The notes beneath the pieces are model-generated. The model did no database searches, had not been told where the DNA came from, and saw nothing but the letters and a program-made list of their open reading frames with translations. DNA of 64,000 nt. Origin: Macrostomum lignano. Taxonomy: Eukaryota. This document shows, one piece after another, positions 4,889 through 46,700 of the stretch. The stretch is from NCBI GenBank assembly GCA_002269645.1, contig NIVC01001020.1:248001-312000 (forward strand). Reading direction: 5' to 3'. A program made the translations under genes and the position numbers. Position 1 is the first letter of the stretch, and the number at the start of each line of letters is the position of its first letter.

Positions 4889-6387
4889 AGTAATGAAATT
4901 TAAAATTTTAATAAACAGTTGAATAAATATATTTATAATAAGTTGAATATACAATATAAATTAATATGCATAGTTTTCAATTGAAACAAGTTCTAACACA
5001 CGGTGCAGTAGCATATACTTCAAACTAAAACATGCTGTGTTGGCAGCTAGCACCCCCCCCCCCAAGCTAGCTGGCAGTTTAGGCTTGGGTTCTGATCTTT
5101 GATGTACATAGCCTCTAAGATGTTCAAAGTGTGCTCATGGTGGCAGGAATTAATAATCTTAAATAAATCAAACAGTTTATTATTACAGCATGACTTGCAT
5201 GTGATAAAATGCTCTTGTATAGCAGATTTTTTGGTCTAGTGCTCCTTGATCCTAGTGTGCAAGTGTTGCTTAGTTTTTCCAATGTGCAAAATACCAGTGT
5301 TGGGTACCATTAATAAAAATCTTAACTTCCATTAATGGCAAAAGCATTAGCATTAAAACAAAAAATTTTTACTAATTTTTTACTACTAATTTTTTTAGAT
5401 CTTAGTTATAAGATCTCATAGTATTTAAAATCTATTTGAAAATCTATAATATGATATTTTTATTTTATACAGTCTAAGTCACTATTTTATCCTCTTATAA
5501 GTTATATACTAGGGCTTAGAACTTAAAGTGTATATAAGTATATCAATATCTTTTTGATTTTTTAGCAGAAATAAAAAAATGATTTTAATATGGATTTGGT
5601 TTTAAAAATAAATGCAACCTATAAAGTTGCTTTGACCATTTTGTTTCTTTGCTTTAGTTTTTTTTTCATTTTTGGTTATTAATTTTGATTTAGGCCTATC
5701 CTTGGTCTATCATAATTTATATTAGCCAGATTAGTTAAGTTTTATCTAGCAATAGTAGACATATAATTTAGATTTTAGTAGCTCTATAAAAGGATACTAA
5801 ACCTTGGCAAGAAAAACTGGTCCTTGTAGGAGAATCTTGGCATAAATATTTTCTAAGAAAACCTTGCTTTGAAAAAATTTGATAGGAAACTTGCCTATAA
5901 GAAAATCTTATGATTCCTAGTGCCTGACTATTTGCACTTATAAATAGCCTCTACAATACAGCCCGAGTTTTAAAAAAGTAAGTCACATATTTGTCAAAAC
6001 TAAGTTGCATAGCTAGTATAATTTCAGAGATTGCATATGCATTATTACCAAAGTAGACATGTGCTATGAATTAGCTACCATAGATTTAGATAAATAGATT
6101 TAAAAATGGAAGTCAAAATGTGATTGTTGAATCAACCAATGATAGGCCCCTAGGATTGTATAAATTTATAAAATATAGCCCAGCTAGGGGCTTGCATTCA
6201 ACTTTTGACTCATAATGATCTTTTGCAAAGCTTAAGCTTTGTTTTTACTTAAAGATTTTATAAGCAGCCAGTTTTTTAGTTTATTAATTAATAAGCCAAA
6301 TATCAATTTAAGCTGGTAAACTTTCATCAAAATGTAATGTAAAATATTTTCAGCTAGATCTCAGTATAATACCAAAGTTAAGCTGAG

Positions 6388-9300
6388 ATGAAGCAGACAA
6401 CCTTAGCCATGGCATGGGGTGGCCAAAAACCTGTTGCCATGCCAAGTGGTTTCAGCGCCATCAGTGGTGCCAGACAAGTGGCATCAGCGCCATCTACTTC
6501 AACAACTGCAGCAGTCTCTGCTGGCGCTGAGTCGACTTTTCCAACAGACATCAGTCAGCTGGATTTTCGAGCTAATGCAAAATTGCCATTGGCTTTGCGG
6601 GCTTCAAAGAATGATTCAAACACGTTGGAGGGTTTTGACGCTAGCGGAGAGGGAGCTGTGTGGGTCTACCCTGTGAATTTTCCGGTGAGACTTTTACAAT
6701 GATCTCGGAGGAATTCTATTGAATGCTAGGCTAGGCAATCCTGAATTTGAGCTGAAGTGTGAAGTCTATGGTAGTAATCGGCTGAAGTGTGATCTCAGCG
6801 TGATCGGCTGAAGCGGGATTAAAATGATTAATGATCAGTCGGATTAAGAGATTAGGCAGTTGAGATCAGTCGGATTAAGAGATTAGGCAGGTGAGATCAG
6901 TCGGATTAAGTCAGAGATTAGGCAGGTGAGATCAACCGGATTAAATCAGAGATTAGGCAGGTGAGATCAATCGGATTAAGAGATTAGGCAAGTGAGATCA
7001 ATCAGATTAAGAGATTAGGCAGGTGAGATCAATCGGATTAAGAGATTAGGCAGGTGAGATCAATCGGATTAAGAGATTAGGCAGGTGAGATCAATCAGAT
7101 TAAGAGATTAGGCAGGTGAGATCAATCGGATTAAGAGATTAGGCAGGTGAGATCAGTCGGATAAAGGGATTAGGTAGGTGAGATCAGTCGGATTAAGTCA
7201 GAGATTAGGCAGGTGAGATCAGTCGGATTAAGTCAGAGGTTAGGCAGGTGAGATCAATTGGATTAAGAGATTAGGCAGGTGAGATCAGTCGGATTAAGGG
7301 ATTAGGTAGGTGAGATCAGTCGGATTAAGAGAATATCTGATGTGGTGGCAACCGCAGGTGCGCGAATACCAGTACAACATAGTGGCCAGCGCCCTGGCCA
7401 AAAACACCCTGGTCTGCCTGCCGACCGGCCTCGGCAAGACCTTCATCGCGGCCGTGGTCATGATGAACTTCTACCGCTGGTACCCCGCCGGTCGGGTGGT
7501 GTTCATGGCGCCAACTAAGCCGCTGGTTGCTCAGCAGATCGACGCCTGCTATGGCATCGCCGGGGTGCCGGCGGCCGACACCATCGAGATGACCGGCTGC
7601 ATGCCGCCTGCGGCTAGGCGAGCTGCCTGGCAGGACAAGCGTCTGTTCTTCTGCACACCGCAGGTTGCTCTCATTGTTTTGCTTGTTTGTTTCTTTCTGT
7701 CTACTGTCAGTAGCTTTTTTAGACTTTGTATTTACATTTAAATAATAAACTACTCTTCATCTTCCTCTCCCCTTCCCCTCTCCTACCCCTCATCTTCCTT
7801 TCCCTCTCCCCTACCCTACAGTGACTCCCCATCTCCAGACCCAAGCCTACAGTGACTCCCCATCTCCAGACCCAACCCTACAGTGACTCCCCATCTCCAG
7901 ACCCAAGCCTACAGTGACTCCCCATCTCCAGACCCAAGCCTGCAGTGACTCCCCATCTCCAGACCCAAGCCTACAGTGACTCCCCATCTCCAGACCCAAC
8001 CCTGCAGTGACTCCCCATCTCCAGACCCAAGCCTACAGTGACTCCCCATCTCCAGACCCAAGCCTACAGTGACTCCCCATCTCCAGACCCAAGCCTGCAG
8101 TGACTCCCCATCTCCAGACCCAAGCCTGCAGTGACTCCCCATTTCCAGACCCAACCCTACAGTGACTCCCCATCTCAAGACCCAAGCCTACAGTGACTCC
8201 CCATCTCCAGACCCAAGCCTACAGTGACTCCCCATCTCCAGACCCAACCCTGCAGTGACTCCCCATCTCCAGACCCAACCCTGCAGTGACTCCCCATCTC
8301 CAGACCCAACCCTGCAGTGACTCCCCATCTCCAGACCCAAGCCTACAGTGACTCCCCATCTCCAGACCCAAGCCTACAGTGACTCCCCATCTCCAGACCC
8401 AAGCCTACAGTGACTCCCTTTCTCCAGACCCAAGCCTACAGTGACTCCCCATCTACCTACCTGTCAGGTGTTCGCCAACGACCTCACCAACCAGCTGTGC
8501 GACCCGGCCCAAGTCCGCTGCGTAGTGATAGACGAAGCGCACAAAGCCACAGGCAATCACGCCTACTGCGTGGCCATTCGCACTTTAGCATCGAGGCACA
8601 ACCAGTTCCGAGTGCTGGCTCTGTCGGCCACGCCCGGCTCGGATGTCCGGTCGGTGCAGGAGGTGATTAACAATCTGCTGATATCGCATATCGAGCTGCG
8701 CACCGAGCAGTGCAGGGATATTCAGCGGTATTCGCACGAGAGAAATGTGGAGAAGATTGTGGTGCCGCTCGGGCCCGAGGTGGAAGCTGCGGTGCGGCGA
8801 CTGGAGGCCATCATTGATGTCTATGTGTCCCGGCTCAAGCAGAACAAGGCAGGTTTGCGGCAGTTTGCTGTTGCGCACGAGCCTGGTTTGTATTGGGATC
8901 CTTGGGGAGTTAATTTGGGTTCAAAGTTCAAGGATATGGAATCAGGTTTTAAGGATTGAATTCTAGATTTATGGATGAACACAGGATCAATATTCTGGGG
9001 TTTAGGACCAACAGTCTAAGATTTTCGGATCAGTATTCTAGGATTTGGTATCAATGTTATGGGATTTGGGATCAATGTTATGGGATTTGGGATCAATGTT
9101 ATGGGATTTCGGATCAGTATTCTAGGATTTTGGATCAATGTTATGGGATTTAGGATCAATGTTATGGCATTTCGGATCAGTATTCTAGAATTTGGGATCA
9201 AGATTATGGGATTGGTGATCAAGATCCTGTGATTGGGGATCAAGATCCTGGGATTTAGGATCAGATTCAGGGATTTGGGATCAATTTTTTTGAGATTTAG

Positions 9301-11586
9301 AATCAAGATCCTGGGATTTGAGATAAAGTTCTGTGGGGATCAGGATTAAATTATTCAAAGACGTGAATAATTTAGCTCGTAGGTATTTAGGATTCAGCTG
9401 TTTGAAATCTTCAACTATCGATTGAATCCGCAGGCCGTGTACGCCAGTGTCCGCGTGGCCACCCTGTCCAAGTACGCGCTGATCATGCAGCGCCAGGAGT
9501 TCTTCCAGCGCTACGGCGGCAGCATACCGCCTGACCGGCAGTCCTTCATTCACCGCAACTTCGCCATGGCCATCTCGCTCTATCACGGCTACGAGATTGT
9601 GCAACAGCACGGGCTGAGGCCGCTGTACAATTTTCTCAAGGTTGGCAGTCTTTGTCCTGTCTTCCTGGCTGGTTATAGTCTTTATTATTGGGTATATAAC
9701 CATAACCAGGGTCTTTGCTCCTTAAGAGACTTATGCTAAGTATATATTTTGTAATTTTGACAATAGTGTTAGCTCGGATTTCTTTGTTCAGTCTTTGTTC
9801 AAGGGCTAAAATGTTAAACATTGGCAGCAGTAACTCCATATTGAGTCTTTGTTCAATGATTCCATAGAGTATTTTCTAAGACACCAAAAAGACTAATGAA
9901 TCTGTGTTCAGAAGCTCTTTAGGTATATCATCTTGTAGATACTGAATTGAGTCTTTGTTCAATAATTACAATGAGTATTATCATCGTAGATGCTGAAATA
10001 GAGTCTTTGTTTCGGTTCGAAACAACAAAGACCACAATCTCGCACTCCCCAGGGCGTGCTGGAGGGCGAGCGCGGCTCGAACTCCACCCGGCTAGAGCTG
10101 CAGCGGCAGCCGGCATTCGCAGAGCTGTGGGACAGCCTACTGGACAAGTTCAAGCCCGACCCCAACTCCACCCTGAGCAGTACTCAGGCCGCATTCGTTG
10201 GCGGTCACCCCAAGCTCAGCCGCCTGCTGGAGATTGTGCTGGAGCATTTCCAGTCAACCGAGGACCCAGCCGAGCGTCAGCGCACGCGGGTGATCATATT
10301 CTCGCAGTACCGCGACTCCGTGACCGAGATTGCCCGCATGCTCAAGCAGCACCGGCCGCTGGTGCGCTGCATGACCTTCTTTGGCCAGGCCAGCACGGGC
10401 AAGAATAGCAAAGGCTTGACGCAGAAGGACCAGCTGAGGGTGATGCAGGAGTTCCGGCAGGGCGCCTACAACACGCTGGTGTCCACCTGCGTTGGAGAGG
10501 AGGGTGAGTAACTGCAGAGCGACCCAGTCCCCAAGACCCAAACACTATAGAGTCACTTTCGCTTGTGTGCTCAAACTGACCAGTGGGTTGTCATGCTTTC
10601 AACTTTCAACCCGCAGGCCTGGACATCGGCCAGGTCGACCTCATCATCTGCTACGACGCCCAGAAGAGCCCCGTACGCCTCATTCAGCGCATGGGCCGAA
10701 CCGGGCGGGCGCGACAAGGCCGCATCGTGATGCTGCTGGCTGCCGGCAAGGAGGAGGCCAGCTACGGCGCCTCGCTTAGCAAGCGCGCTTCGGTGAACAA
10801 GGTCATCCTTGACGGCTTTCGCAAGCTGCAGTTCTACTCTGACACGCCCAGGATGATACCGACTGGCCTGCAGCCTACTGTCAGCCTGCGGCGTCTGGAT
10901 ATTCAACAGCGGCCCGCGGCTGGCGGAGCGGCTAGAAAGCGTCGAGCTGTTGGCAGCAGCGTCGCCGACGGCGGTGGCGGCTGCAGCTCCGCCAAGCTGC
11001 GACCCGACCAGGTGCTGGACTACGAGACCCGCCTGGCCTCCTCGGCGCCAACCTTTGCCCGCCTGCTGCCTCCCAGACTGCGCTGCCTGCCATCGACTCT
11101 GGCCGAGACCGAGGACGACCTTCGGCAACATCGACATCCGCAGCAGCAGATGCCGCTCGACCACTGCCGCCGCCCATCGCGATTCGCTTCCAACGGTCCC
11201 GCTGGCGGCGCCTCGGTGACCCGGCACCACTTGGTGGCCCTGGGCCGCCTGCTGGGCTGCCACCGCGCCGGAGCCACCAACCTGATGTTCCACGCTGTCG
11301 GACTGCGCGATCTTGAGGATGCCAACCTCACGGCGGTTGCCACTCAGACTGCGCGGCTCCTGCTGGCTGATGACGATCTCGACGAAGATTTCGCAGATGA
11401 TGACGACGTCCCCATCCCCATCGACGACGATCTGGACTGTCCCCGGATGTTCGACGACAGCGCTGAGGAGCAGCTGCTGATGCCGCCGCCTGCCGCGCAG
11501 CCACGGCTGCCGGCGGAGATGCCGCTGCTGTCAACTCAAACTCTGTTCCGAGGCGCAGCCGCTGCTGCAGGTTGTTGTTTACTCGT

Positions 11587-11625
<39 letters not shown>

Positions 11626-12272: not shown

Positions 12273-15200
12273 TTGATGATGATGTTGATGATGATGGTGT
12301 TGATGATGATGATGATGATAATGATATGATTATGATGATGATGATAATGATATGATTATGATGATGATGATTGTGATGATGATTATCATGATGATGATGT
12401 TGATGATTATAATGATGATGATTATGATTATGATAATGATGATGATTATAATAATGATGATGATAATAATGATGATGATGTTAATTGCAGACATCGCCAC
12501 CTTCTCCACCCCTCCTGCTGCTGTCGCAGATGCCGAGGCCCCTGCAGAAAATGCCAACGACCTTCAGACGGACGGCGCGCCGATTTCGCCCGTGTTTCGC
12601 AGCTCCGCAGCGGTCCGGCGGCATCGGCTATCGTCACAGGCTGCCGCCTCCGCCGCCTCCATTGCCGCGGCAGAGCCGACCATGTCGCTGGCCGAGGCAA
12701 CGTCGTCCAGGCGGCCTCTGTACTCGCTGCGTCCGTTCCAGCCCGCCACGGCCGCCGAGCTGGAGTCGCTGCAGTCGGCGATTCAATGCCTGCTGAGCGC
12801 CGACGAACCGGACGATGTCGGCGAAATTGTCGACCAGTTGGCCGAGGAGTGGCGGTCGGAGCGCAGCCGGCTGCTGCCCACGCTGCTGCTGAAGTCGAAG
12901 CCAGCCGCTGCTGATTGCGACAGCAACTGGCAGCTGCTGGACGGCGCCGAGAACTGGTCGGTGGACGATCTGTTCGCCTCGGCTGAGGACCAGAAGCCGC
13001 CGCCCGAGGACTTGGTGGTGCTGGCTAGCCAGCGGCCGCCCGAGGACTTGGTGGTGCTGGCTAGCCAGCGGCCAACCAAGTTCGGCTCCGTGTTCCAGAG
13101 CCTGCCGCGCTGCTCGCAGAAGCGGGTCAGCTTTGCTATCGCAGATTTGGGCAGCTTAGAGGAACAAAGACCAGTTCAGAAGAATAAAGACCCGGAGGAA
13201 CAAAGACCAGCACAGCAGAATAAAGACCTGGAGGAACAAAGACCAGCACAGCAGAATAAAGACCTGGAGGAACAAAGACCAGCGCAGCAGAATAAAGACC
13301 CAGAGGAACAAAGACCAGCGCAGCAGAATAAAGACCTGGAGGAACAAAGACCAGCGCAGCAGAATAAAGACCCAGAGGAACAAAGACCAGCGCAGCAGAA
13401 TAAAGACCTGGAGGAACAAAGACCAGCGCAGCAGAATAAAGACCCAGAGGAACAAAGACCAGCGCAGCAGAATAAAGACCTAGAGGAACAAAGACCAGTG
13501 CAACCGGTTAGTAGCACCGAGAATGCAACGCCTAGAACAATTGGCCGAATTGGCAGCCTAGGCTTCACTGTGTCTGCAAACAAAGACTACAGCCGCGATT
13601 TGGACAAAGACCTAGAAAAGCAAGTCGCCTTTGTTGTAGTTCCATCTGCCACTGATAATGACAACAAAGACCAGCTTGATGCGGAGTCAGCTGTACCTAA
13701 GACCGCCGCCGCCTCCACTCCTAAAGCCAGTCGGGAGTGTGAAAGGGGGGTACTATTTAAGCCGGACAAAGACCTCAATATCGCTACCCCTAGCCAGTCT
13801 ATTGGAACCATTGGCTGGGTAAACAAAAACCACAATTGCGACATCAAAGCAACAAAGACTACTGCTGTCTGCGCTTCGCCGATGCCTCCAGTACAGAACA
13901 CTCCCATTTGTAAAGATTCGAACAAAGACTCTAAATTGTTTGACTCAGCCGCCAGACGACGAGGCCGCATATTCTCGAAGATCTTCCAGCTGATGCCGGT
14001 CGCAACCCCGGAGGCGCCGACGCCGCTCGCGCGCCGACCTCTGACGGCCTGGTCGGTGGCAGAGCCGGCGGCGGCCCGTGCAGCTGCAGCTCGCAACGCG
14101 GACAACCAGCTGGACTTCTCGGCGGCGCTGCGCCTCCTTGAAGCAACAGACGACAGCGAACAGTCGTCCAACTTGCCCGCGGCTGTTCCGTCCTCTGTCA
14201 CTGCCGACATGTTTCGAATCGAGACCGACCTGTTCCAGCCAGTGGAGCCGTCGGCAGAAGCTTCCCCTGTGTTCGACAAGCTGGGCGCTTCATCTCAGAA
14301 ATTGATGAAGCAGCTGCCCCCAGCCACTCCTCCAAAGTGCAACGGCACTAATGATGACAAGGCTAATAAAATTGATGATGACGAGGACCTATTGATGCTG
14401 GACACAAGCTGGCTTGCCGAATTGACCCAACCGTTGAATTCTCCAGTTTTGCCAAAACAATCGCTTGAAAAGAAAAAGAGAAATGCAAATGATAAGCCTG
14501 CTGCTGCTGCTGCTGCTGGGGAGATAAACAAAGACTGCGACGATGACTTCTTGCGACCTCTGCCGCCCCCGCCTCCTAATCCGGCCACTCCGACTCGTCA
14601 TGCCCGGCTCAGCAGGGCGTCGCCGTCCCGCCCGATGAAGCGAAAATCGACATCCCCGACTCGGCCGGGATCCCCTGAGCTGAACGCCTCCGCCTCCTCC
14701 GCGTCCGCGTCTTCATTTCTTGCCTTGCAGAAGAAGATTCTGGCCAAGAAGAAGCAGAAGCCGAAGTCTTTGTCCAAGTCGCAGGCTCGCTCCCTGTCTT
14801 TGGCAGCCGCTTTGCCGGCTTCTGGAGAACGGGAGGAGCGGCCCCAGCGAGACCCGAGACCGAAGAGGCCTCGGCGACATCGCGGCGGAGGTTGCGACTT
14901 CCTTGACGACGAGGCCGCCCTGACTGACAGCGACGCGGATTTCGTGTCGAGCGATGAGGCATCGGATGCTGCGGACAGCGACGCCGGGTCGAGCTTCGTA
15001 GACGACGCCACCCAACAGGAAGCGGAAACTTCCGCTGTAGCCGCCGCTGGCGGTATGCGCGCAATCTACCTGCGCAGTTTGGCTACTGCGCAGCAGAGTC
15101 CCGCGCGCCGGTTTAAAATCCCCTCTCTGGCTGACCGGCCGTTCAATCCCGCCGAGGTGTTCTCCCAGCTGCCGCGGGCTGGCGTGCCGGAGTCGCCCGA

Positions 15201-15453
15201 GTCCGAGTACCAGTTCGACTCCTTCCTGGTGCCCAACGAGCAGGCCGTCAGCCCCGCCGCCGCCACCGCCAAGTCGCCGCTGTCTGCCGCCATCGCTCTG
15301 GGCAAGCGGCGAGCAAAAGCGGCTGTAAATAATACTACTAAAAGTAGTAAGCAGCAGCAGGCGAAACAGCAACGACGGAGGCTGGTGGTGATTCAGGAGG
15401 ACACACAGTTCTGCGCGGATGACGCGGATAACAGCTCGGACGATTTCCAGTGA
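6388..15453 (+). CDS. FANCM: Fanconi anemia group M DEAH helicase/translocase, about 1852 aa
   Basis: Exons 6388-6684, 7358-7663, 8468-8848, 9434-9640, 10053-10503, 10617-11570, 12491-15453 (5559 nt, phases consistent; intron 3 requires a GC donor). Motifs: WVYPVNFP-VREYQ, LPTGLGKT, VIDEAHKA, LSATPG, VIIFSQYR, GLDIGQVDLIICYD, IQRMGRTGR, and MM3-like FLDDEA...MRAIYLRS. Confidence 0.95.
6830..7330 (+). repeat. 31/35-bp minisatellite, FANCM intron 1
   Basis: Unit GAGATCAATCGGATTAAGAGATTAGGCAGGT. Confidence 0.95.
7815..8455 (+). repeat. 31-bp minisatellite, FANCM intron 2
   Basis: Unit ACAGTGACTCCCCATCTCCAGACCCAAGCCT, about 20 copies. Confidence 0.97.
8990..9330 (+). repeat. Degenerate 21-bp minisatellite, FANCM intron 3
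   Basis: Unit GGGATTTGGGATCAATGTTAT and variants. Confidence 0.88.
11587..12480 (+). repeat. (GAT)n trinucleotide microsatellite, FANCM intron 6
   Basis: About 900 bp of GAT with GTT, then AAT/TAT variants. It explains the poly-Met ORFs. Confidence 0.98.
13159..13500 (+). repeat. Coding 36-bp tandem repeat in FANCM exon 7
   Basis: Encodes (EEQRPAQQNKD[L/P]) about 9-10 times. Confidence 0.95.
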
Positions 15454-25912: not shown

Positions 25913-26327
25913 GTTGAAGTTTGCTCTCAAAGCAGTTTGTCAAAGTGAAACTCAACTCTTTATTCATTTTTTATAACTTTTTAAACAAGTTTTTAAGGTA
26001 GCAGAACTAGGTTAAAATTTATGCTCAATATAAAAACTACTATCTAATTTAATGTTTTTTTTCAATTATCAAAAACATACTTTTTGTTAATTTATATGAT
26101 AAACATTACTTTTTAACCATACATTTTACTGCCTGTGCTCCTGTTTTCAACTCCAGTTCTGCTCTAGAATCTCAATTGATTTCGGTTTTATTGTCTGCCT
26201 GCCTGCTATAAACAGACTTTCTATCATTATTATATTGTCTGCTAATATTAGCTGTCTGCTAAATTTAGCAGGAAAACTCGCTTATTTCTACTTTTATCAG
26301 TAGTCTGATTAGAAAGCCATTAGAGAA

Positions 26328-27050
26328 TCTACGGCGCCGAAATGAGAATCGATGGCACCAAAGTTAAAATTGATGGCGCTGAAATGAGAATCAATGGCGC
26401 CAAAATGAGAATCGATGGCGCCGAAATGAAAATCGATGGCGCCAAAATGAGAATCGATGGCACCAAAGTTAAAATCGATGGCGCCAAAATGAGAATCGAT
26501 TGCACCAAAGTTAAAATTGATGGCGCCGAAATGAGAATCAATGGCGCCAAAATGAGAATCGATGGCGCCGAAATGAGAATCTACGGCACCGAAATGAGAA
26601 TCGATGGCGCCGAAATGAGAATCGATGGCGCCGAAATGAGAATCTACGGCACCGAAATGAGAATCGATGGCGCCGAAATGAGAATCGATGGCGCCGAAAT
26701 GAGAATCTACGGCACCGAAATGAGAATCGATGGCGCCGAAATGAGAATCGATGGCGCCGAAATGAGAATCTACGGCGCCGAAATGAGAATCGATGGCGCC
26801 GAAATGAGAATCTACGGCGCCGAAATGAGAATCTACGGCGCCGAAATGAGAATCTACGGCGCCGAAATGAGAATCGATGGCGCCGAAATGAGAATCGATG
26901 GCGCCGAAATGAGAATCGATGGCGCCGAAATGAGAATCTACGGCGCCGAAATGAGAATCGATGGCGCCGAAATGAGAATCTACGGCGCCGAAATGAGAAT
27001 CGATGGCGCCGAAATGAGAATCTACGGCGCCGAAATGAGAATCAATGTCG
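26328..27050 (+). repeat. 21-bp minisatellite
   Basis: Unit GATGGCGCCGAAATGAGAATC, with a TACGGC variant. Confidence 0.97.
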
Positions 27051-27949
27051 CCCACAACTGCATAACAGTAACGACCCCAAATGAGACTCAAAGGTGTTAT
27101 CAGAAGTGCATGTAATTAAAAATTGCATGGATAAGCCGCAGTTGTTTACAGCAATTTCTAAGCTGATAAAAATGCCAGCTATTTCTGTTCGCAAGTGCAG
27201 CAGCAACCACCACATGACTCGTGTTTACTTTATGACTGCAGTCTCTATAAATGCTGCTCAACCTGTCTGCTCAAATGCTTCCTTCAAATCTTCTTCATTG
27301 ACCCATTGACTGGTTTCAGAGTGGAGTGAAATTGCTCTCGGCTCGTTTGAAGTTATTGATTGCAACCCCCCCCCCCTGTCACCCCTCTCACCCTCTGCCC
27401 GGGCTGTTGCGGTAGAATGAGAGTGAATGTACATTCAGCTTGTGCACACCGGGCGCATGTGTACATTTTGCAGCTGTTAGAATTTCTCTGCGGGTGGGAA
27501 GGAATGTGTTGATTGTTGACAGAAGTTGCAGCGTACAACAAATACTACATACAATTTGTATTGCACAGAATTTTCATTGCTAATTGGATATATTTATAGT
27601 TTTCATTGTTTTTCACTTTAGAAAGAAAGGCCACACTGCTAATATAATCATGAGAGCATATGCCAGCCTAAATTTCACCTTTTTGTGTTACCACCAGGAA
27701 TTTCGTGTCTCATCCCCCCCCCCCGAGTCTAAGGGTCTTTTTGTTTGCTGTCTCATGTCTCATACAGACGCTCGGGTCTGTAGCGAGCGTACAGCATGGG
27801 GGGGGTCAGTACCGTTTAGTGCTCTCTGCTATTGCTGCTCCAGTTTTAGAGCAGTCTTTAGAGCCTGTGCAGGAGACTATGTAATTAAACACAGAGACAG
27901 AGGAGAAAAGAGGATAGAAGAGGAGAGAAAAGAGAATCAAAGCTAAGTG

Positions 27950-28925
27950 ACCAGAGACTACAGACACAAGACTAGAGATTGGAAACTAGAGACTAGAGGC
28001 CAGAGACTAGAGACCAGACGCTATAGAGACTAGAGTCCAGAGACTAGAGATCAGGGGCTAGAGACTAGAGATCAGGGGCTAGAGATCAGGGGCTAGAGAC
28101 TAGAGATCAGGGGCTAGAGACTAGAGGCCATAGACTAGAGATTAGAGGCCAGAGACCATAGACTAGTGGCCAGAGACTAGAGACCAGACGCTATAGAGAC
28201 TAGAGTCCAGAGACTAGAGATCAGGGGCTAGAGACTAGAGATCAGGGGCTAGAGATCAGGGGCTAGAGACTAGAGATCAGGGGCTAGAGACTAGAGATCA
28301 GGGGCTAGAGATCAGAGGCCAGAGACCATAGACTAGTGGCCAGAGACTAGAGACCAGACGCTATAGAGACTAGAGGCCAGAGACTAGAGACCAGACGCTA
28401 TAGAGACTTAGAGGCCCGAGACTAGAGATCAGGGGCTAGAGACTAGAGATCAGGGACTAGAGACTAGAGATCAGGGGCTAGAGGCTAGAGATCAGGGGCT
28501 AGAGACTAAAGATCAGGGGCTAGAGACTAGAGACCAGACGCTATAGAGACTAGAGATCAGGGGCTAGAGACTAGAGACCAGACGCTATAGAGACTAGAGA
28601 TCAGGGGCTAGAGACTAGAGATCAGGGGCTAGAGACTAGAGATCAGGGGCTAGAGACTAGAGATCAGGGGCTAGAGACTAGAGATCAGGGGCTAGAGACT
28701 AGAGACCAGACGCTATAGAGACTAGAGATCAGGGGCTAGAGACTAGAGATCAGGGGCTAGAGACTAGAGGCCAGAGACTATGGACTAGAGGCCAGAGACC
28801 ATAGACTAGAGGCCATAGACAAGAGATCAGAGGCCAGAGACCATAGACTAGAGGCCAGAGACTAGAGATCAGAGGCCAGAAACCATAGACCAGTGGCCAG
28901 AGATTAGAGACTAGAGACTAAAGAC
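27950..28925 (+). repeat. Compound minisatellite built on AGAGACT/AGAGATCAGGGGCT
   Basis: Mixed units AGAGACTAGAGATCAGGGGCT and AGAGACCAGACGCTAT. Confidence 0.92.
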
Positions 28926-29369
28926 AAGATCAATAAACTACGCCCGTAGATAAAGATGAGAAATCAGAGAGACCAGATAGAATGCTATTAATAGTTTGGC
29001 AATGCAAGGCAGACAGCTAAATGAGCCATAAATGAAGCCGAAAGCGGTCTGCAGAGCCTCGTGGGAACTCGCGGACTGTCAAGTGGACCGACAGGTTATT
29101 ATGAAAGAATTTTTCTACCTTCCAGTCACCGCCGCCATCATCGTAAACTGGAGAATGCTATGCTGGGTGTGCAGCCTAGGTGTAATTCATATTTAATCTC
29201 TATTAGAAAATTATAGTTCTCACACAGTTTTATTTTTCACTGCTAAACTAACCTAATACGTCGCAATTTTTTTGCGAATTCACACGAATTAATTGATAGT
29301 GAAATCTGATGTTATTTTTCTCACCTGCTTTAATGAAAAAATAGAAAAGACGAGACAAGACAATATGAG

Positions 29370-29500
29370 ATAGGGAAGAGAAGAGAGGAGAGGAGAGGGG
29401 AGGAGAGGAGAGGAGAGGAGAGGGGAGGAGAGGAGAGGGGAGGAGATGGGAGGAGAGGAGAGGAGAGGAGAGGGGAGGAGAGGAGTAGAGAGAGAGAGAA
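29370..29500 (+). repeat. (GGAGA)n polypurine tract
   Basis: Direct inspection. It abuts the 3' side of the hammerhead-bearing segment. Confidence 0.9.
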
Positions 29501-29552
29501 GAGAGGTCACGGCGTGTTTAAAAAAATCAAAAGACTTAATTAATTTAATATG

Positions 29553-29590
29553 GGCTACCGGTTTCGAGCCTCTGGGCTCTTCGTCAGGCC
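29553..29590 (-). ncRNA. Minimal type I hammerhead ribozyme (Penelope/retrozyme type)
   Basis: Minus strand reads GGC CUGACGA A GAGCC-CAGA-GGCUC GAAA C-CG-GUA GCC. It has the full catalytic core, a 5-bp stem II, a palindromic ACCGGU stem III, a GUA cleavage triplet and a 3-bp stem I. Confidence 0.82.
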
Positions 29591-30319
29591 AAAAAATCTG
29601 TGTGTCATGCAATGCAAGTTGGTCTTTTAAGTATTATCTTTCTTAGTCTGATAGAATTGATGAGTAGTTGTACATATGAGGGATGTACATTTAAAACCCT
29701 GTTTTGCCTAGCTCTAACTTGTCCCAGAGGCTTTCCACCATTCATTTTAAACGACAGTATATTTGTAATAAAAAAAATGTTATTTCGAAGTACTATGCGA
29801 TATGCGATACTATACGATTAGATGAAATGCCGGTATTGGGGGTAGGAGCATAAAAATCAATACTGAGCGTACAATTAAGCAGTTTGAATAAAATAAAATA
29901 AATGACACGCGAATAAATATTGTACGAGTACTTTAATAGGGTAAAAATAGCGCATTGGTTAAAATGATTAAATGTTTCCTGGCTGAGACTTGAACTTATT
30001 GGGAGCCAGGAGGCTCTGTAAGTTACGTTGCCGTGTAAAAGCGGGCAGTATGCGGGAGCCTGGTTTATTTTGTAGCTTATCAAAGTTTTTAGCAATCTCG
30101 TTGGCAAGCCAGACCGTAGATGGGTGAAAAGGAAGGACCATTGGGATGGGTCGGAGAATATGATTGTCGACCCTGATGTTCGTGCCTGGCGGTTTGTCAG
30201 TCCCTAGCTTTTTAATCCAGATTTCTTCCCTTAGTTCGATTTTGTTGTTATTAAGAACATGTTCGATAGCAATGGAGACAAAGTTTGCAATCGAGTGATT
30301 GGGGGTGAGAAAGTGCTCA

Positions 30320-31657
30320 GAGGGGAGGAGGGGAGGAGAGGGGAGGAGAGGAGAGGAGAGGGGAGGAGGAGAGGGAGGAGAGGAGAGGAGAGGGAGGAGG
30401 AGAGGGGAGGAGGAGAGGGGAGGAGAGGAGAGGAGAGGGGAGGAGGAGAGGGGAGGAGAGGAGAGGAGAGGGGAGGAGGAGAGGGGAGGAGAGGAGAGTA
30501 GAGGAGAGGAGAGGAGAGGGGAGGAGAGGGGAGGAGAGGAGAGTAGAGGAGAGGAGAGGAGAGGGGAGGAGAGGGGAGGAGAGGAGAGGAGAGGAGAGGG
30601 GAGGAGAGGAGAGGAGAGGAGATGGGAGGAGAGGAGAGGAGAGGAGAGGGGAGGAGAGGAGAGGAGAGGGGAGGAGAGGAGAGGAGAGGAGAGGGGAGGA
30701 GAGGGGAGGAGGAGAGGGGAGGAGGAGAGGGGAGGAGAGGAGAGTAGAGGAGAGGAGAGGAGAGGGGAGGAGAGGGGAGGAGAGGAGAGGAGAGGAGAGG
30801 GGAGGAGAGGAGAGGAGAGGAGATGGGAGGAGAGGAGAGGAGAGGAGAGGGGAGGAGAGGAGAGGAGAGGGGAGGAGAGGAGAGGAGAGGAGAGGGGAGG
30901 AGAGGGGAGGAGGAGAGGGGAGGAGGAGAGGGGAGGAGAGGAGAGTAGAGGAGAGGAGAGGGGAGGAGAGGGGAGGAGGAGAGGGAGGAGAGGAGAGGGG
31001 AGGAGATGGGAGGAGAGGAGAGGAGAGGAGAGGGGAGGAGAGGAGAGGGGAGGAGAGGAGAGTAGAGGAGAGGAGAGTAGAGGACGAGAGGGGAGGAGAG
31101 GAGAGTAGAGGAGAGGAGAGGGGAGGAGAGGAGAGGAGAGGAGAGGAGAGGGGAGGAGAGGGGAGGAGAGGAGAGGGGAGGAGAGGAGAGGGGTGGAAAG
31201 GGGAGGAGAGGAGAGGGGAGGAGATGGGAGGAGAGGAGAGGAGAGGAGAGGGGAGGAGAGGAGAGGGGAGGAGAGGAGAGGGAGGAGAGGAGAGGAGAGG
31301 GGAGGAGGAGAGGGGAGGAGAGGAGAGGAGAGGGGAGGAGGAGAGGGGAGGAGGAGAGGGGAGGAGAGGAGAGGAGAGGGGAGGAGGAGAGGGGAGGAGA
31401 GGAGAGGGGAGGAGAGGAGAGGAGAGGGGAGGAGGAGAGGGGAGGAGAGGAGAGGAGAGGGGAGGAGGAGAGGGGAGGAGGAGAGGGAGGAGAGGAGAGG
31501 AGAGGGGAGGAGGAGAGGGGAGGAGAGGAGAGAAGAGGGGAGGAGGAGAGGGGAGGAGGAGAGGGGAGGAGAGGAGAGGAGAGGGGAGGAGGAGAGGGGA
31601 GGAGGAGAGGGGAGGAGAGGAGAGGGGAGGACGAGAGGGGAGGAGAGGGGAGGAGAG
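30320..31657 (+). repeat. About 1.3-kb (GGAGA/GGAGGAGAGG)n polypurine tract
   Basis: Almost no pyrimidines on the plus strand. Confidence 0.98.
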
Positions 31658-32127
31658 ACGAGGCTTCAAATCAGAGAACGTCAAGAAAAATTGTTAGATA
31701 AAGCAAAAAAAAGTAAAAGCAGAGCGACACGAGAAATTGCTGAGAGGCGAAGGCGGAGCCGATGGCGCAACGGTGAAAACAGACCCCCCGCTAATTCAGT
31801 CTACTATCGATGTGAGTCAGCGCTGGATATTGCGCAAATCGCAGTGCCCATTGGCGCTGACCTTGGCCCAGCCCACGCAGTATTTTCTATTTGTGTTGGA
31901 AAAAAATTAATGAGCGTTGCATTAATTAGCCGCGGTGCGTGCGGAACCCTGCACGGTGCGGCCACGCTTTCTGTAATTGCACTCTCTGCTCTGCTTGTGC
32001 GACCGAATATGATTATTGTGGAGTGGAATGCAGAGCTCGGAACTGGGGCTCTGGCACTCTCGTTTGGCTTGCTTGAGTCTTCTGCTTTTGTTGCAATTGA
32101 GACAATCAGTTCTTTTCTTTTTTGTTT

Positions 32128-32560
32128 TCTCACCCATCTATCTCACTCTCCTTCTCACCCCAATTTCACCCTCCTTCAGCCAATCTCACTCTCCTTCTCA
32201 CCCCAATGTCACCCTCCTTCAGCCAATCTCACTCTCCTTCTCACCCCAATGTCACCCTCCTTCAGCCAATCTCACTCTCCTTCTCACCCCAATGTCACCC
32301 TCCTTCACCCAATCTCACTCTCCTTCTCACCCCAATGTCACCCTCCTTCACCCAATCTCACTCTCCTTCTCACCCCAATGTCACCCTCCTTCACCCAATC
32401 TCACTCTCCTTCTTACTCTCCTTCCCACCCAATCTCACTCTCCTTCTCACTATTTTTCTCACCCAATCTCACTCTTTCTCACCCCAATGTCACCCTCCTT
32501 CATCCAATCTCACTCTCCCTCTCACCCAATCTCACTCTCGCTCTCACCCAATTTCACTCA
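32128..32560 (+). repeat. 43-bp minisatellite
   Basis: Unit CTCACCCCAATGTCACCCTCCTTCAGCCAATCTCACTCTCCTT. Confidence 0.92.
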
Positions 32561-32928
32561 ACAAATCATGTTACAGAGCTTCATTTCAAATGAAGCATTC
32601 CGTTTTAAAATTTATAACCGATTTTGTTAAAACTGACAGAAAAAGACTGTTGAGAATTTCCACTCTAAGCAGCGGGGGGGTTATTAATAGTACAGGAGCA
32701 GATGAGCTCAGTGGGGAAGAGAGAATGGGGATCGGGGAACGGCGAGGAGCCGAGGTTGGCCCGGGAGGACTCATTCCACCTGTGTTTCTATTATTAGTAG
32801 GTAGCGGCAGTGCGGGATTTAGCCAGGGTGAGTCAGCAGCCAAATTAGGGATTTGTACGGCTTGGGAGCACCGGCCTCCATGCTCCCCTGTGCACTGCAA
32901 ATCCCCAGCCCCCGGCTCAGGCCAGGGG

Positions 32929-33021
32929 TATAAATCCGCCACAGACGGACGGGCCAAGGGACAGCATGAGCACAGCTGGGGAACAGACAACTCGCGCCGA
33001 CTTTGCTTTCAATATCTCTGG
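32929..33021 (+). promoter_or_regulatory. Candidate TATA promoter and non-coding first exon of the ELF/E74 gene
   Basis: TATAAAT at 32929-32935, a strong donor G|GTAAGT at 33021/33022, and an acceptor TTTCTGCAG ending at 34594, just before ATG 34613. Confidence 0.45.
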
Positions 33022-33924
33022 GTAAGTTTGCGCTACAGTGATTCTCTGAGACAAATAGCAATTGTTGCAGACAGTTAATTATCTTAAAGCAAACTCAACA
33101 GATAGGTCAAATATTTAGTTTATTGCTCTGATACAGCTGCGCCATATCTCTTTTAAGATACTTAGAGCCGGCCCATAGCATGTCCTGTCATTTATTCACA
33201 GGCCAAATTAGTCAGGCTTGGGTGGGCAGGCAGGCATTTCATTCACGCGCCTTGGGTTCTGCTAGATTGAGTGACTCACTTCAGCCAAGCATGTTTAGCA
33301 AATGTCTCTCTAGCAGGAATAAGCCAGCTGGCTAGAGTTCGTCCACGCGCATCGTATGCTTTCTTTGTTCTGTCTGGTTCTTGCTAAAGGCGAGTGGCCC
33401 AGTGGGAAACTCTCCACAGTGACTCACAGCCCAGCCCCGCAGCCGCAGTGCCTTCATATTTCATTGTGAATTACGCGCGGCCTGTGTGTGCACGCAGGTC
33501 AATGCGCCGTGTGTACGAATCCAGCCCTGGCCCCCAGAACTCGATAGCGCAGAGCTCCATAATAGGCTGCATGGGGTGGCTCCAGCTCGAGGCTCAATTT
33601 TAGACATTTCGTACCAAAAATGCGCGAATTAAGGAGGGAGGGAGGGGGGTTGGTGGAGAGAGGTGAAAAGGTTACACAGCGTGTTCGTTGGGGTTGTGTA
33701 TCGAGCGCACATATATAAATATAATATTGTGAAGGCACAGTCTCAAGTTAGCTTTGAAGCTTTTGTTCTATAGAAATTTTTTTCTGCTCAAATTAATTTG
33801 TATTTTTCCCATAGTCATCCGATACATTTATTAGTGTAATTGGTAAGTTTATTGGTTGTGTATTTGAGAATATTGGTTGGCAGGATTCGAACTTAAATGC
33901 ATCATTTCTGCAGTTCTCTCCCGT

Positions 33925-34142
33925 TACCTTGTGGCGCCCCTGTTCACCTTGTGGCGCCTCTTGTTCACCTTGTGGCGCCTCTTGTTTCCCATTGTGGCGC
34001 CTCTTGTTTCCCATTGTGGCGCCTCTTGTTTCCCATTGTGGCGCCTCTTGTTTCCCTTTGTGGCGCCTCTTGTTTCCCTTGTGGCGCCTCTTGTTCACCT
34101 TGTGGCGCCTCTTGTTCACCTTGTGGCGCCTCTTGTTCACGC
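33925..34142 (+). repeat. 21/22-bp minisatellite
   Basis: Unit TTGTGGCGCCTCTTGTTCACC / ...TTTCCCA. Confidence 0.93.
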
Positions 34143-36429: not shown

Positions 36430-38361
36430 ACAGCAGCAGCAACAGGACTCCAGCCAGTGCTTTAAGAAGAAGCTACTGCAGCGCTACGTCACTCACGCTA
36501 GTACGTGGGTCCCCGCTAGCCTGTGAATGGGAAATTAGCGCGTTGTCATAGCAACTAGGCATAAACACTGCGATACGCCACCAGCTGGCACAGGGTGCAG
36601 ACTCGGAGCCTCAAGAAGACAAGTACAAACCCGAACCCCCGCGAACGCCCCCACCCTCCCCCAATTCCTTCCGAGTTGACATTTCGATCCGCAGGCCGCG
36701 AGGCGCCGCAGGCGTTTGTTAATCTTATCTCAGCCCAGCAAGGTATGGCTCGAGCTGGCTCAGCTGACCTTTGTCATTCTCCTCGCTCTCGAATCTGTCC
36801 CGAAAACGTTTCAAGTTGCACCTGGGGTCTTATCTGACCAGAAAAAAACTAAGTTATCTCGGGCCCCAACCCGAAGTCTACTCGAATGTTTTTCGGGCTA
36901 AGGACCCCAGCTAACAGCTCCGATAGCGAAATCAACAGAGCAAAGGTTGATCCCGCGCCAATCTGGGTTTTGTTATAATCAGCGGCTCAAGTTCAGGGCG
37001 ATTCCCCGCACTTGGCTACCAAACTCGGACCATACTCAACAGCCGAACTCCCCAACCCCCCACTGCTCAGATGAGTCCGAACTCGCCAGCCTCGTGCCGA
37101 GCAGCCCGACCGACTCTGGCGTGTCCGGCCTGTCCGAGTTCGACGCCAGCGAGATGGCAGCCGCGGTGGCCGGCCTGGTCAAGCCGAAGCCGACTTACCA
37201 GCTGCCGCACCAGCTGCCGCACCAGCCCCGCCAGGTGGTCGCAGGCGGCCTGTCCTGGCAGCAGTTCATCAAGACCCCGACAACGCCCGACTTCCCGATG
37301 CCCGGCGCCCCGACCGCCTCCGCCTCCGCCGGTCGGGTCGGCCTGCTGAGCAAAGCCGACGACCCTCCGATGCAGTCGGCCGTGCAGCAGCCGCCTCGGC
37401 CGCAGCCGTCGCACACGCACACGCGGATCAAGACGGCGCACCGGGTGACCCGCGACCAGCAGCTCAGGCTGGAGACCGGCGGCCAGTGCGATGACCTGGT
37501 GATCATGGACACCGACAGTCTGCGAAGGCACCGAATGGGCGAGTCCTTTGCTGCTCACGCCACTACTAAGCGAGGTGAGGACTCGATACAAAGTTTAACC
37601 TTAATTGACCTTATTACATTACTGTGCATGAATTCTAACAAGCTTATCCACTCGACTTGCACCTGCGCAGAGCACTGCACCTACAGTCCGTTCGGCGAAG
37701 AGGTTCAGCTCGTCTGCCCGAAGCGCAGGCGAGACGGCGGCCAGACCTACCTGTGGGAGTTTCTGCTCGACCTGCTGCACAATCCCACCTACAGTCCGCG
37801 CTTCATCAAGTGGCTGGACAAGGAGCGAGGCGTCTTCAAGCTGGTGGACAGTCGGGCCGTGTCCAAGCTGTGGGGCATGCTCAAGAACAAGCCGGACATG
37901 ACGTACGAGACAATGGGCCGAGCTCTCAGGTGAGAACACTTGACAACAGCATAGCAACAGCATAGCAAAAGCATAGCAACAGCATCGAAACAGCATAGAA
38001 ACAACATATAGAAACTGCATAGCAACAACATAGAAACAGCTTAGCAAAACCATTGTAACAGCATAGCAACATCATAGCAACAACATAGCAACAGCATAGA
38101 AACAGCATAGCAACAGCAAAGCAATAGCATAGCAACATCATCGTAACAGCATAGCAACACCAATGAAACAGCATAGCAACACCACAGAAACAGCATAGAA
38201 ACAGCCATAAATTTTACAATAATCTTCTCAAAATGTCCCTCAGATACTACTACGCCCGAGGAATTCTCAATAAAGTTGACGGCCAGCGCTTGGTTTACCA
38301 GTTCGCCAACCTGAAGAAGCTCAGAGAGCCACCGACAGCGGCGGGTCTGTGCGAGGCCTAG
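34613..38361 (+). CDS. ETS transcription factor, ELF/E74 subfamily, long isoform about 460 aa
   Basis: Exons 34613-34732, 34871-35252, 37071-37574, 37671-37929, 38244-38361 (1383 nt). The ETS domain [11 protein letters not shown]...[60 protein letters not shown] matches the ELF1/2/4-E74 signature. Confidence 0.92.
36227..36500 (+). CDS. Candidate alternative first coding exon (polyQ-rich) of the ELF/E74 gene
   Basis: TATAAAAG at 36101-36108 and ATG at 36227 open a Q-rich frame. The donor GCT A|GTACGT at 36500/36501 is phase 1, matching the phase-1 acceptor at 37071, and gives an isoform of about 384 aa. Confidence 0.62.
37945..38210 (+). repeat. CAGCATAGCAAC-core repeat, last ELF intron
   Basis: Degenerate 11/22-bp units. 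Confidence 0.88.
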
Positions 38362-43700: not shown

Positions 43701-46700
43701 CATCCAGCTCGGCCCGGATTTCCGGCGGCAGGGCGGCCAGACAGGACTGGCTGAGCTGGGAGGCGGCTGGCAGCGGGACCACCTGATCCCGATCCTGATC
43801 CCGATCCCGATTCTGGTCCCGGTCCCGGAGCTGAGCTCGGATAGCAGTGGCCATGGAGTCCGGCAGGGCGGCAAGAAAATCTTCGTCGATTTGTGGAGCA
43901 CCGGAGTCGAAGAGGGCGGAGGACAGGTCGTACTGAGTGCAGTCCGCTGCTGAGGGGCTGCGGTGGTCAACATGCTGGTGAATGCTAGCATTGTGAATGG
44001 CTGATGGTGAATGCTAGCATTGTGAATGGCTGATGGTGAATGCTAGTATTGTGAATGGCTGATGGTGAATGTTAGTATTGTGAATGGCTGATGGTGAATG
44101 CTAGTATTGTGAATGGCTGATGGTGAATGCTAGCATTGTGAATGGCTGATGGTGAATGCTAGCATTGTGAATGGCTGATGGTGAATGCTAGTATTGTGAA
44201 TGGCTGATGGTGAATGCTAGCATTGTGAATGGCTGCTGGTGAATGCTAGCATTGTGAATGGCTAATGGTGAATGCTAGCATTGTGAATGGCTGATGGTGA
44301 ATGCTAGTATTGTGAATGGCTGATGGAGAATGCTAGCATTGTGAATGGCTGCTGGAGAATGCTAGCATTGTGAATGGCTGCTGGTGAATGCTAGAATTGT
44401 GAATGGCTGATGGTGAATGCTAGTATTGTGAATGGCTGATGGTGAATGCTAGTACTGTGAATGGCTGATGGCGAATGCTAGTATTGTGAATGGCTGATGG
44501 TGAATGCTAGCATTGTGAATGGCTGATGGTGAATGCTAGCACTGTGAATGGCTGATGGTGAATGCTAGTATTGTGAATGGCTGATGGTGAATGCTAGCAT
44601 TGTGAATGGCTAATGGTGAATGCTAGTACTGTGAATGGCTGATGGTAAATGCTACACTGTGAATGGCTGATGGTGAATGCTAGTATTGTGAATGGCTGAT
44701 GGTGAATGCTAGTATTGTGAATGGCTGATGGTGAATGCTAGCACTGTGAATGGCTGGTGGTGAATGCTAGTATTGTGAATGGCTAGTGGTAATATATGAC
44801 ATGGATCATATATCGGTCATACACACAAGTCATAGCACCGCTCTTACACACCAATCATTCATTAGCATCGCTCATACACACCAGTCATAGCATCGCTCAT
44901 ACAAACCAGTCATAGCATCGCTCATACACAACTGTCATAGCATCGCTCATACACACCAGTTATAGCATCGCTCATACACACCAATCATAGCATCGCTCAT
45001 ACACACCAGTCATAGCATCGCTCATATACACCAGTCATAGCACCGCTCATACACAACTGTCATAGCACCGCTCATACACACCAGTCATAGCATCGCTCAT
45101 ACACAACTGTCATAGCACCGCTCATACACACCAGTCATAGCACCGCTCATACACACCAGTCATAGCATCGCTCATACACACCAGTCATAGCACCGCTCAT
45201 CCACACCAGTCATAGCACCGCTCATACACACCAGTCATAGCATCGCTCATACACACCAATCATAGCATCGCTCATACACACCAGTCATAGCATCGCTCAT
45301 ACACCCCAGTCATAGCATCGCTCATACACCCCAGTCATAGCATCGCTCATACACCCCAGTCATAGCATCGCTCATACACACCAATCATAGCATCGCTCAT
45401 ACACACCAGTCATAGCATCGCTCATACACCCGTCATAGCATTGCTCATACACACCAGTCATAGCATCGCTCATACACACCAATCATAGCATCGCTCATAC
45501 ACACCAGTTATAGCATCGCTCATACACTCCAGTCATACTGGCACTCACAAGAACGCAAGCCTCACTCAAGGCAGTGTAACACAGATGATCAGAATCGGAT
45601 AAACTATTCTAAAATAAAACTCTCGCTCTCACGCGGCTCAAGTTTCCGGTGGCGCAGACTGCCAGCCTCACTGCTTCCAGGGGCAGCCAAGCAATAAATC
45701 TAGCATCGCACAAGCAAGGCTAAGTTCAATTTTGTGAAACCAAAGCAGAGCCGGAAACAGGAAGCAGTGACTCTTACACAGCTGGACTGTCGGCCCGTTC
45801 GTCGCCCTCTTCATCCTCTATCAGGCTTGGACCCGCGGCATTTGCAAAGAAATTTGCCTTTCCTGTCACTTTGTTTCTGTCATTGGAATAGCAGTTGGAT
45901 GAAGCCTTGCGGCCAAGCAGTTTTGCACCGGATGCACCGGATGCACCGGAAGTAGCGCCTGACGGGCCACCGAAGGTATTGCTAGAACTGGTGCCAGAAG
46001 CAGAGCTGAAAGACATAGAACCGGAAGTGGCGCCAGACATAGAACCGGAAGTGGCACCGGACATAGAACCGGAAGTGGCGCCGGACATAGAACCGGAAGT
46101 GGCGCCGGACATAGAACCGGAAGTGACGCCGGACATAGAACCGGAAGTGGCGCCGGACATAGAACCGGAAGTGGCGCCAGGCATAGAACCGGAAGTGGCG
46201 CCGGACATAGAACCGGAAGTGGCGCCTGACATAGAACCGGAAGTGGCGACGGACATAGAACCGGAAGTGGCGCCGGACATAAAACCGGAAGTGGCGCCAG
46301 ACATAGAACTGGAAGTGGCGCCAGATAGAGAGCTCGCAGCAGATCCGCTAGCAGCGAAAGGATTAACCTTTTTGGCAAAACGGCTGATATCCATGGACCG
46401 CCCGCCTCCTCCGCTGGAGCCGCTTCCGCCGGAACCGGTAGTCGCCGGCACCAGTCGAGTCATGTGGATGCCCAAGCCGCGCATATCCTGCGGCGCCAAG
46501 CGGAGCTGGCGCACAATGATCATGCACTCCTGCAGCAGCAGTCTGGCATCGTCGGTGTCTAGCGGCAGTGCGACGCTCTTGTTGACGGTGTTGCAGACGC
46601 CGTGGCCGCCGAATTTCGCCGTCTCCTGCGGAGCATCTGGCCGGCGCATCATAGCCTGCGGTGCGGTTGCAATGACAACACGGAATTGTTATCCCAGATC

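Follow-up and report, generated by a model that had tools for sequence, protein, structure and literature searches.

The locus and its two homologous counterparts

The stretch of DNA analysed here, hereafter the window, covers 64 kb of the Macrostomum lignano contig NIVC01001020.1. It contains several exon-like ORFs with Pfam matches, namely to Helicase_C at 10583-11590 (+), to the IMS_C family of a REV1-like polymerase at 45774-46652 (-) and to eukaryotic porin/VDAC at 57704-58459 (-; 5.8e-33), as well as an ATG-initiated ORF of 1033 aa at 12352-15453 (+) in which no Pfam family was found at E<=0.01. An ELF-like transcription factor gene has its ATG at 34613. The proteins closest to the Ets-domain ORF at 36947-37933 are two M. 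lignano proteins encoded at two other loci of the same assembly (GCA_002269645.1), located on contigs NIVC01000616.1 (L001) and NIVC01002108.1 (L002). All three loci have the same gene order, in which a REV1-like gene comes after the Ets gene and is encoded on the other strand. Along 4 kb of the Ets gene, the window has 97.5% identity with L001 and 96.4% with L002; between L001 and L002 the value is 94.5%. Another allele or a homeolog within M. lignano, or a very close relative, would account for such values.

Tandem repeats, the lengths of which vary among the three homologous loci, make up most of the 8 kb of intergenic DNA upstream of the ELF-like gene. Just upstream of the ATG, at 33926-34140, lies an array of the 21-bp unit ACCTTGTGGCGCCTCTTGTTC, which is also found in L001 at about 8550-9526, much expanded, and in L002 at about 11040-11527; it may be a repeated binding site. 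Another 21-bp unit, GAGAATCGATGGCGCCGAAAT, forms a tandem array of about 35 copies at 26323-27052 (87% matches), with an array organization conserved in L001 and L002; it is open in frames of both strands (ORFs 26309-27091 on the minus and 26342-27115 on the plus strand). The palindrome GGCGCC is contained in both arrays. Two minisatellites, at 27969-28929 and 32140-32557, made of 21/42-bp AGACTAGAGACCAGAGACTAG units and 43-bp CT-rich units, flank the site of the insertion described below. In L002, the microsatellite end and its unique flank have undergone a tandem duplication of about 750 bp (6600-6850 versus 7351-7600), which includes a perfect hairpin, tcgtgtgaattcgca-aaaaaa-tgcgaattcacacga; the segment is single in the window and in L001, where only one of the two hairpin arms is found.

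An 812-bp block and its coding remnant

In this region, TRF delimited a main microsatellite array of about 270 (AGAGG)n units on the plus strand, at 30319..31657, and a distal segment of (CCTCT)n type on the minus strand, at 29373..29506, which is severed from the main array by an insertion. The main array aligns to L002 from 7461 onward, and the distal segment to L002 up to 6848 and to L001 at 5536-5849. Blastn comparisons aligned positions 27000-29504 and 30367-34138 of the window to L002, and the corresponding parts to L001; nothing from about 29505 to 30366 matches L001 or L002, both flanks being 82-91% identical. At these two loci, the (CCTCT)n array runs unbroken into the unique flank ctatctcatattgtcttgtct, which in the window follows the array at 29373. 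Because the L001 and L002 arrays are continuous and devoid of the block, the 812 bp at 30318..29507 have been inserted in the window, at a point about 130 bp from the end of the microsatellite. The window thus provides a filled site and L001 and L002 two empty ones, the pattern expected from the mobility of a Penelope-like element (PLE). The boundary at 29507 was placed at the point where the repeat units start again, with a margin of 1-4 nt owing to the simple-repeat flank. Both flanks consist of CT-type simple repeat, so that a target-site duplication is unreadable. The insertion lies upstream of the ELF-like gene and antisense to it, some 5 kb away from the ATG; the longer M. lignano gene model begins about 3.3 kb from it.

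All parts of the block (29507..30318) read on the minus strand. It opens with an ORF remnant of 116 codons (348 nt) without stops at 29971..30318, ended by a TAA at 29970..29968. An AT-rich 3' UTR of 377 nt (29591..29967; GC 0.33) separates the stop codon from a hammerhead motif at 29590..29553, which lies on the same strand in the non-coding flank of the ORF, as in PLEs. Beyond the hammerhead there is an AT-rich 3' terminal segment of 46 nt, CATATTAAATTAATTAAGTCTTTTGATTTTTTTAAACACGCCGTGA (29507..29552; GC 0.24), and the insertion ends 49 nt past the predicted cut site. The AT-rich tail and the CT-type microsatellite following it, already noticed in the initial annotation of this DNA, are both present. 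When the 812 bp were searched at the nucleotide level against the rest of the window and all the other loci, a single borderline match of 32 nt was obtained, in the coding part.

The frame of the ORF remnant is open from the junction base itself, 30318, and the tblastn homology begins there too. A phmmer search with the 116-aa fragment against 1.84 billion representative proteins retrieved 19 relatives (best E-values 1.5e-30 and 1.5e-27). The exhaustive search was needed, a word-indexed protein search with the fragment alone giving no match and Pfam only a sub-threshold one to DUF5371. The fragment aligns to the extreme C-termini of four long proteins (713-779 aa), covering residues 617-725 of 730 in P0125, 661-773 of 779, 590-705 of 713 and 625-740 of 741 in the others. 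Pfam recognised RVT_1 and/or GIY-YIG in three of the four: P0125, the only long relative with both families, matches each of them weakly, P0136 has RVT_1, the sole match to this family above the Pfam cut-off among the four, and P0135 has GIY-YIG; neither family was detected in P0138. GIY-YIG matches were also found in shorter relatives. By their domain order and size, these proteins are like those of canonical PLEs.

In the alignment, the fragment starts past the GIY and YVG motifs and retains ..HF....HS.. and RE..WIKKLGT..PPG.N. What survives is therefore the C-terminal third of the endonuclease (EN), that is, the end of the GIY-YIG domain and the C-terminal tail, the N-terminal two thirds being missing. 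After the GIY-YIG domain, the C-termini of P0121-P0128 and the window at 29971-30165 (minus) contain a module of about 65 aa with the pattern P.V.PFHP....L...I.........PAF.R..NLQ.L.AP.KF, which has no Pfam match and is common to all aligned PLE relatives.

Tblastn with twelve relatives identified 30318..29971 as the sole PLE-coding remnant in the window and gave no PLE-coding match in L001 or L002. With the full-length relatives, no reverse transcriptase (RT) was found anywhere in the window, this domain having been lost by the 5' truncation at 30318. The initial annotation had seen neither an RT nor a GIY-YIG ORF nearby; as regards the latter it was mistaken, since a GIY-YIG remnant lies directly upstream of the hammerhead. 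The window also lacks a pLTR, any tandem or inverted arrangement, any repeat of the block and a second hammerhead. The copy is accordingly a fragment of a PLE, an incomplete member of its class, and the class assignment rests on the EN C-terminus and on the relatives, at a locus without RT, pLTR or second copy.

A history of opposite polarity, in which an ancestral block was deleted from the microsatellite in L001 as well as in L002, appears very improbable. Microsatellites are prone to slippage and deletion, and the array lengths differ among the three loci; however, this history demands two independent precise losses or a single one in a common ancestor of L001 and L002, and these two loci are less alike (94.5%) than either is to the window (96.4% and 97.5%). 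Moreover, the anatomy of the block is exactly that of a retrotransposed 3' fragment, with coding homology from the junction base. We retain insertion in the window, and a recent one since the block is absent from M. lignano loci that are 96-97.5% identical nearby. As judged from these sequence comparisons, the 812-bp block is a recent 5'-truncated PLE insertion.

The hammerhead and its equivalents in related elements

The 38 nt of the minus strand at 29590..29553, GGCCTGACGAAGAGCCCAGAGGCTCGAAACCGGTAGCC, contain a complete type I hammerhead core with the layout GGC-CUGACGA-A-GAGCC(CAGA)GGCUC-GAA-ACCGGU-A^GCC. Stem I is formed by 3 bp between GGC (29590-29588) and GCC (29555-29553). Between these two strands, the first core box CUGACGA (29587-29581), corresponding to C3, U4, G5, A6, C7, G8 and A9, is followed by an extra A (29580), placed between A9 and G10.1, and by stem II, which consists of 5 Watson-Crick bp between GAGCC (29579-29575) and GGCUC (29570-29566), has the loop CAGA and is closed by G10.1-C11.1 (G29579-C29566). 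The second core box GAA (29565-29563), corresponding to G12, A13 and A14, precedes stem III, ACCGGU (29562-29557), a loopless 6-nt palindrome in which A15.1 and U16.1 are present. H17 is the A at 29556, and the cut is predicted between 29556 and 29555. Both by direct reading and according to a structural descriptor, every core position of a minimal hammerhead (min-HHR) is in place, including the A15.1-U16.1 pair and an H17 other than G, and the topology is type I, with helix I open and helix II capped. The initial annotation had proposed an intact minimal type I hammerhead on this strand, with an expected cut at this same position, and the core and stems read directly from the sequence agree with it.

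Cervera and de la Pena (2014; PMC4209133) considered the inserted nucleotide, the G10.1-C11.1 pair and the palindromic positions 15.2-16.2 as emergent signatures of PLE min-HHRs and argued that they are non-random. The motif has all of them: the unpaired nucleotide between A9 and G10.1, G10.1-C11.1 and the palindromic stem III. Of the ten contigs encoding the relatives found by the profile search, six carry a min-HHR (L004, L005, L006, L009, L010 and L012). The one in L004, ACAC CUGAAGA A GGCCUA(AUA)UAGGCU GAA ACCGGU C^GUGU, lies 395 nt after the stop, a spacing close to the 377 nt measured in the window. L006 and L012 have their hammerheads upstream of the ORFs, as expected of a 5' pLTR; that of L009 is downstream of the ORF, with AUAU as stem III; L005 has a U3-A8 core with ACGU as stem III; and L010 has a U3-A8 core on the strand opposite to the ORF.

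A palindromic stem III (ACCGGT, ACGT, ATAT or ATGCAT) characterizes all six motifs. Five have a single-A insert, and all five also have G10.1, paired to C11.1 in four and to U as a wobble in L004; in L012, which has no insert, the first pair of stem II is U-A. The strand is that of the ORF in five of the six motifs, which lie either 116-260 nt ahead of the ORF or some 400-900 nt beyond the called ORF. Core positions 3 and 8 are strictly C3-G8 or U3-A8, the latter in two relatives; the same covariant has been described in the Cercyon PLEs of flatworms (PMC4209133). The descriptor demanded stem pairing, so that pairing in the motifs of the relatives is not independent evidence; the unforced features are the insert, G10.1, the palindrome, the covariation of positions 3 and 8, and the location and strand. 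When these loci were simulated, 0.013 motifs with both insert and palindrome were expected, and five were observed.

No convincing motif was found in L003, L007, L008 and L011, and the contigs of L003 and L011 end at most 350 nt past the ORF. The sole match in L011, AT-rich, with U3/G8 and a non-palindromic stem III, was discarded as due to chance. A metagenome scan yielded two additional loci (L013 and L014), one with too little 3' flank and the other without a motif. The min-HHR of L010, at about 4014-4044 on the minus strand, overlaps the start of the called PLE ORF on the opposite strand; it may reflect an inverted truncated PLE copy abutting another one, an arrangement described for PLEs (PMC8557442).

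As stem III is a 6-nt palindrome devoid of a loop, it cannot close within one molecule. In the predicted minimum-free-energy fold of the monomer, core nucleotides pair with each other and the core is disrupted. By contrast, the predicted RNAcofold minimum for the homodimer is a double hammerhead, in which ACCGGU/ACCGGU builds an intermolecular helix III of 6 bp and helices I arise in trans, at -28.5 kcal/mol versus 2 x -12.5 = -25.0 kcal/mol for two monomers. Single PLE min-HHRs showed no detectable cleavage in vitro and dimers cleave only weakly (PMC4209133). Even if transcribed, the lone copy in the window would probably not self-cleave efficiently, and we regard its hammerhead as an intact but idle, probably inert passenger because no partner copy exists in the 64 kb. 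We infer likewise that the ribozyme needs a dimer in vivo and that this copy is inactive.

Origin of the copy and its likeness to known elements

The segment 30318..29507 (minus) is very probably a dead-on-arrival, 5'-truncated copy of a canonical PLE with a C-terminal EN, its hammerhead being the standard minimal ribozyme of such an element and a likely passenger. PLE integration is thought to be TPRT-like and to proceed via the GIY-YIG nuclease, with microsatellites as favoured targets; the copies frequently lack their 5' part and extend for a short distance past the hammerhead (PMC8557442). By analogy, the GIY-YIG endonuclease would have nicked the (CCTCT)n microsatellite, some 5 kb ahead of the ATG of the ELF-like gene, and reverse transcription of the element RNA would have been initiated a few tens of nt beyond the hammerhead. 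Copying would then have halted inside the endonuclease-coding region, so that besides the 46-nt tail, the hammerhead and the 3' UTR only 348 nt of the ORF remained. With a start within the EN coding region and an end 49 nt beyond the cut site, the copy is probably the product of one abortive retrotransposition into the (CCTCT)n array. The active fold of the ribozyme would consist of two copies paired via ACCGGU/ACCGGU, as in tandem or pLTR-bearing elements. The microsatellite target and the short 3' extension fit the published behaviour of PLEs (PMC8557442; PMC11167929).

The hammerhead is of the same kind as the min-HHRs of metazoan PLEs, including Cercyon of Schistosoma mansoni (PMC4209133): they are likewise of type I, without tertiary loop contacts, with the extra nucleotide, G10.1-C11.1 and the palindrome, and they also have a loopless stem III that needs a dimeric fold, are located in non-coding parts of PLEs and occur singly in truncated copies. 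Indeed, most min-HHR motifs are found singly in truncated PLEs, and thousands of such solo motifs exist in animal genomes, including that of a flatworm (PMC4209133). The U3-A8 core of two relatives of the window copy provides an additional likeness to Cercyon PLEs. The stems differ from those of the main S. mansoni families, stem II having 5 bp here versus 7-8 bp and stem I 3 bp versus 4-5 bp (PMC4209133), and the host is here a macrostomid flatworm. Our literature search found no published description of a PLE or a hammerhead for Macrostomum.

With regard to coding capacity, the relatives have an RT followed by a C-terminal GIY-YIG EN, as in the Penelope/Poseidon, Neptune, Nematis and Hydra clades (Craig et al. 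2021; PMC8557442), and the hammerhead near the 3' end or pLTR, the microsatellite target, the 5' truncation and the short extension are also in common with canonical C-terminal-EN clades (PMC8557442). The closest relatives, P0121-P0123 and P0125, come from ENA/Logan contigs, and in P0121 and P0125 there is a C-x4/5-C-x2-C pattern ahead of GIY-YIG that recalls the linker of Neptune and Nematis (PMC8557442), a likeness of pattern rather than a phylogenetic placement. Unlike canonical PLEs, the copy has neither RT, nor the N-terminal two thirds of the EN, nor a pLTR, and its relatives carry the module of about 65 aa after GIY-YIG.

A more detailed comparison is possible with the Poseidon element PAc of Anolis carolinensis (Frangieh et al. 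2024; PMC11167929), which has a pLTR hammerhead and in which reverse transcription starts internally, downstream of the ribozyme, fixing the ends of the genomic copies. The window copy similarly ends downstream of its hammerhead, 49 nt past the cut site. In PAc, however, the hammerhead overlaps the start of the ORF and reverse transcription starts 111-118 bp into the ORF (PMC11167929), about 85-92 nt past the cut site by our own subtraction, the cut being 26 bp after the start codon. PAc hammerhead mutants still inserted normally in vitro (PMC11167929).

The initial annotation had proposed a solo terminus of either a PLE or a retrozyme. The first of these is upheld by the ORF remnant, the 812-bp insertion, the empty loci and the hammerheads of the relatives. 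According to the second, the block would be a non-autonomous animal retrozyme or SINE-like hammerhead repeat, that is, a short non-coding unit propagated as circular RNA and mobilised by PLEs, which has very little chance of being the correct description. The resemblance is real, as retrozymes also possess a type I hammerhead whose stem III is weak and palindromic. The type I motifs of animal non-LTR retrozymes and Schistosoma Sm-alpha are active as dimers (PMC7229834), and animal retrozymes have been proposed to derive from PLE pLTRs (bioRxiv 10.64898/2026.07.22.740005; PMC7229834). Nevertheless, the block opens with 116 open codons homologous to the C-terminus of a PLE EN, and the window contains neither tandem units of this kind nor another hammerhead. 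The retrozymes and Sm-alpha of PMC7229834 consist of short non-coding tandem units with loop-loop contacts and helices of 6 bp and 4 bp, whereas the window copy is single, has a coding remnant and lacks conserved loops. A single copy with a coding remnant does not correspond to an animal non-LTR retrozyme, made of short non-coding tandem units, and we rejected this candidate.

The solo hammerhead of the 5'-truncated PLE copy might have been recruited by the host, for instance for the processing of an antisense RNA arising upstream of the ELF-like gene, or so as to work in trans together with RNAs transcribed from other copies. Such a co-option would be compatible with the fully intact core, an ORF remnant free of stops and the antisense location, at the distances from the ELF ATG and from the longer gene model start given above, yet we find it highly unlikely. 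The element is absent from both homologous loci and hence is not conserved, its intactness is explained by a young insertion whose flanks are 96-97.5% identical to the empty loci, and single min-HHRs are precisely those that failed to cleave detectably in vitro (PMC4209133).

The dead-on-arrival copy shows that a macrostomid flatworm harbours a PLE lineage of the canonical type with a hammerhead, and that near-identical loci differ by the presence or absence of an insertion ahead of the gene for an ELF-like transcription factor; it points to no new mechanism. Because the insertion is young, the ORF remnant stop-free and the ribozyme core perfect, the family might still be transposing in M. lignano or a very close relative, although we hold this to be rather unlikely. 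If it were active, M. lignano, a transgenic laboratory flatworm, would offer a tractable in vivo test of the role of the hammerhead in PLE retrotransposition.

The motif was the sole match in the 64 kb, on both strands, to the type I hammerhead descriptor, which was written on purpose for this analysis and applied in strict and relaxed forms. In 1500 windows simulated by a Markov model that preserved the local dinucleotide content, the permissive descriptor matched on average 0.03 times per 64 kb, and the observed motif, with its perfect 5-bp Watson-Crick stem II and 6-nt palindrome, is well above the descriptor minimum, being by our own arithmetic some four to five orders of magnitude rarer than that permissive minimum. 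The core pattern CTGANGA...GAAA...TH without stems was uninformative, its 22 overlapping matches at three sites not exceeding those in shuffled sequences.

The Rfam scan suggested in the initial annotation, with the hammerhead families Hammerhead_1, _3, _II, HH9 and HH10, gave no match at the gathering score in the whole window, nor at E<=10 in the 351 nt of 29400-29750. These models also miss the min-HHRs of the six related PLE contigs, so that this negative result says little about the motif; the Rfam hammerhead models evidently do not cover the PLE min-HHR variant. A mere chance likeness to the hammerhead consensus in AT-rich intergenic DNA, for which one could invoke the short core, the many loose-pattern matches and the missing Rfam match, is practically excluded, given an expectation that low and a motif that is far above the minimum, is located and oriented as a hammerhead should be after a PLE ORF remnant and has unselected features in common with the motifs of the relatives. 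In terms of annotation, what looks like a perfect intergenic ribozyme is the 3' end of a truncated retrotransposon that goes unflagged by the Rfam hammerhead models. Inside the 3' UTR of the element, on the opposite strand, Rfam reported a match to snoU13 at 29636-29728 (+), which we took as chance (13.7 bits versus a gathering score of 46; E 1.6).
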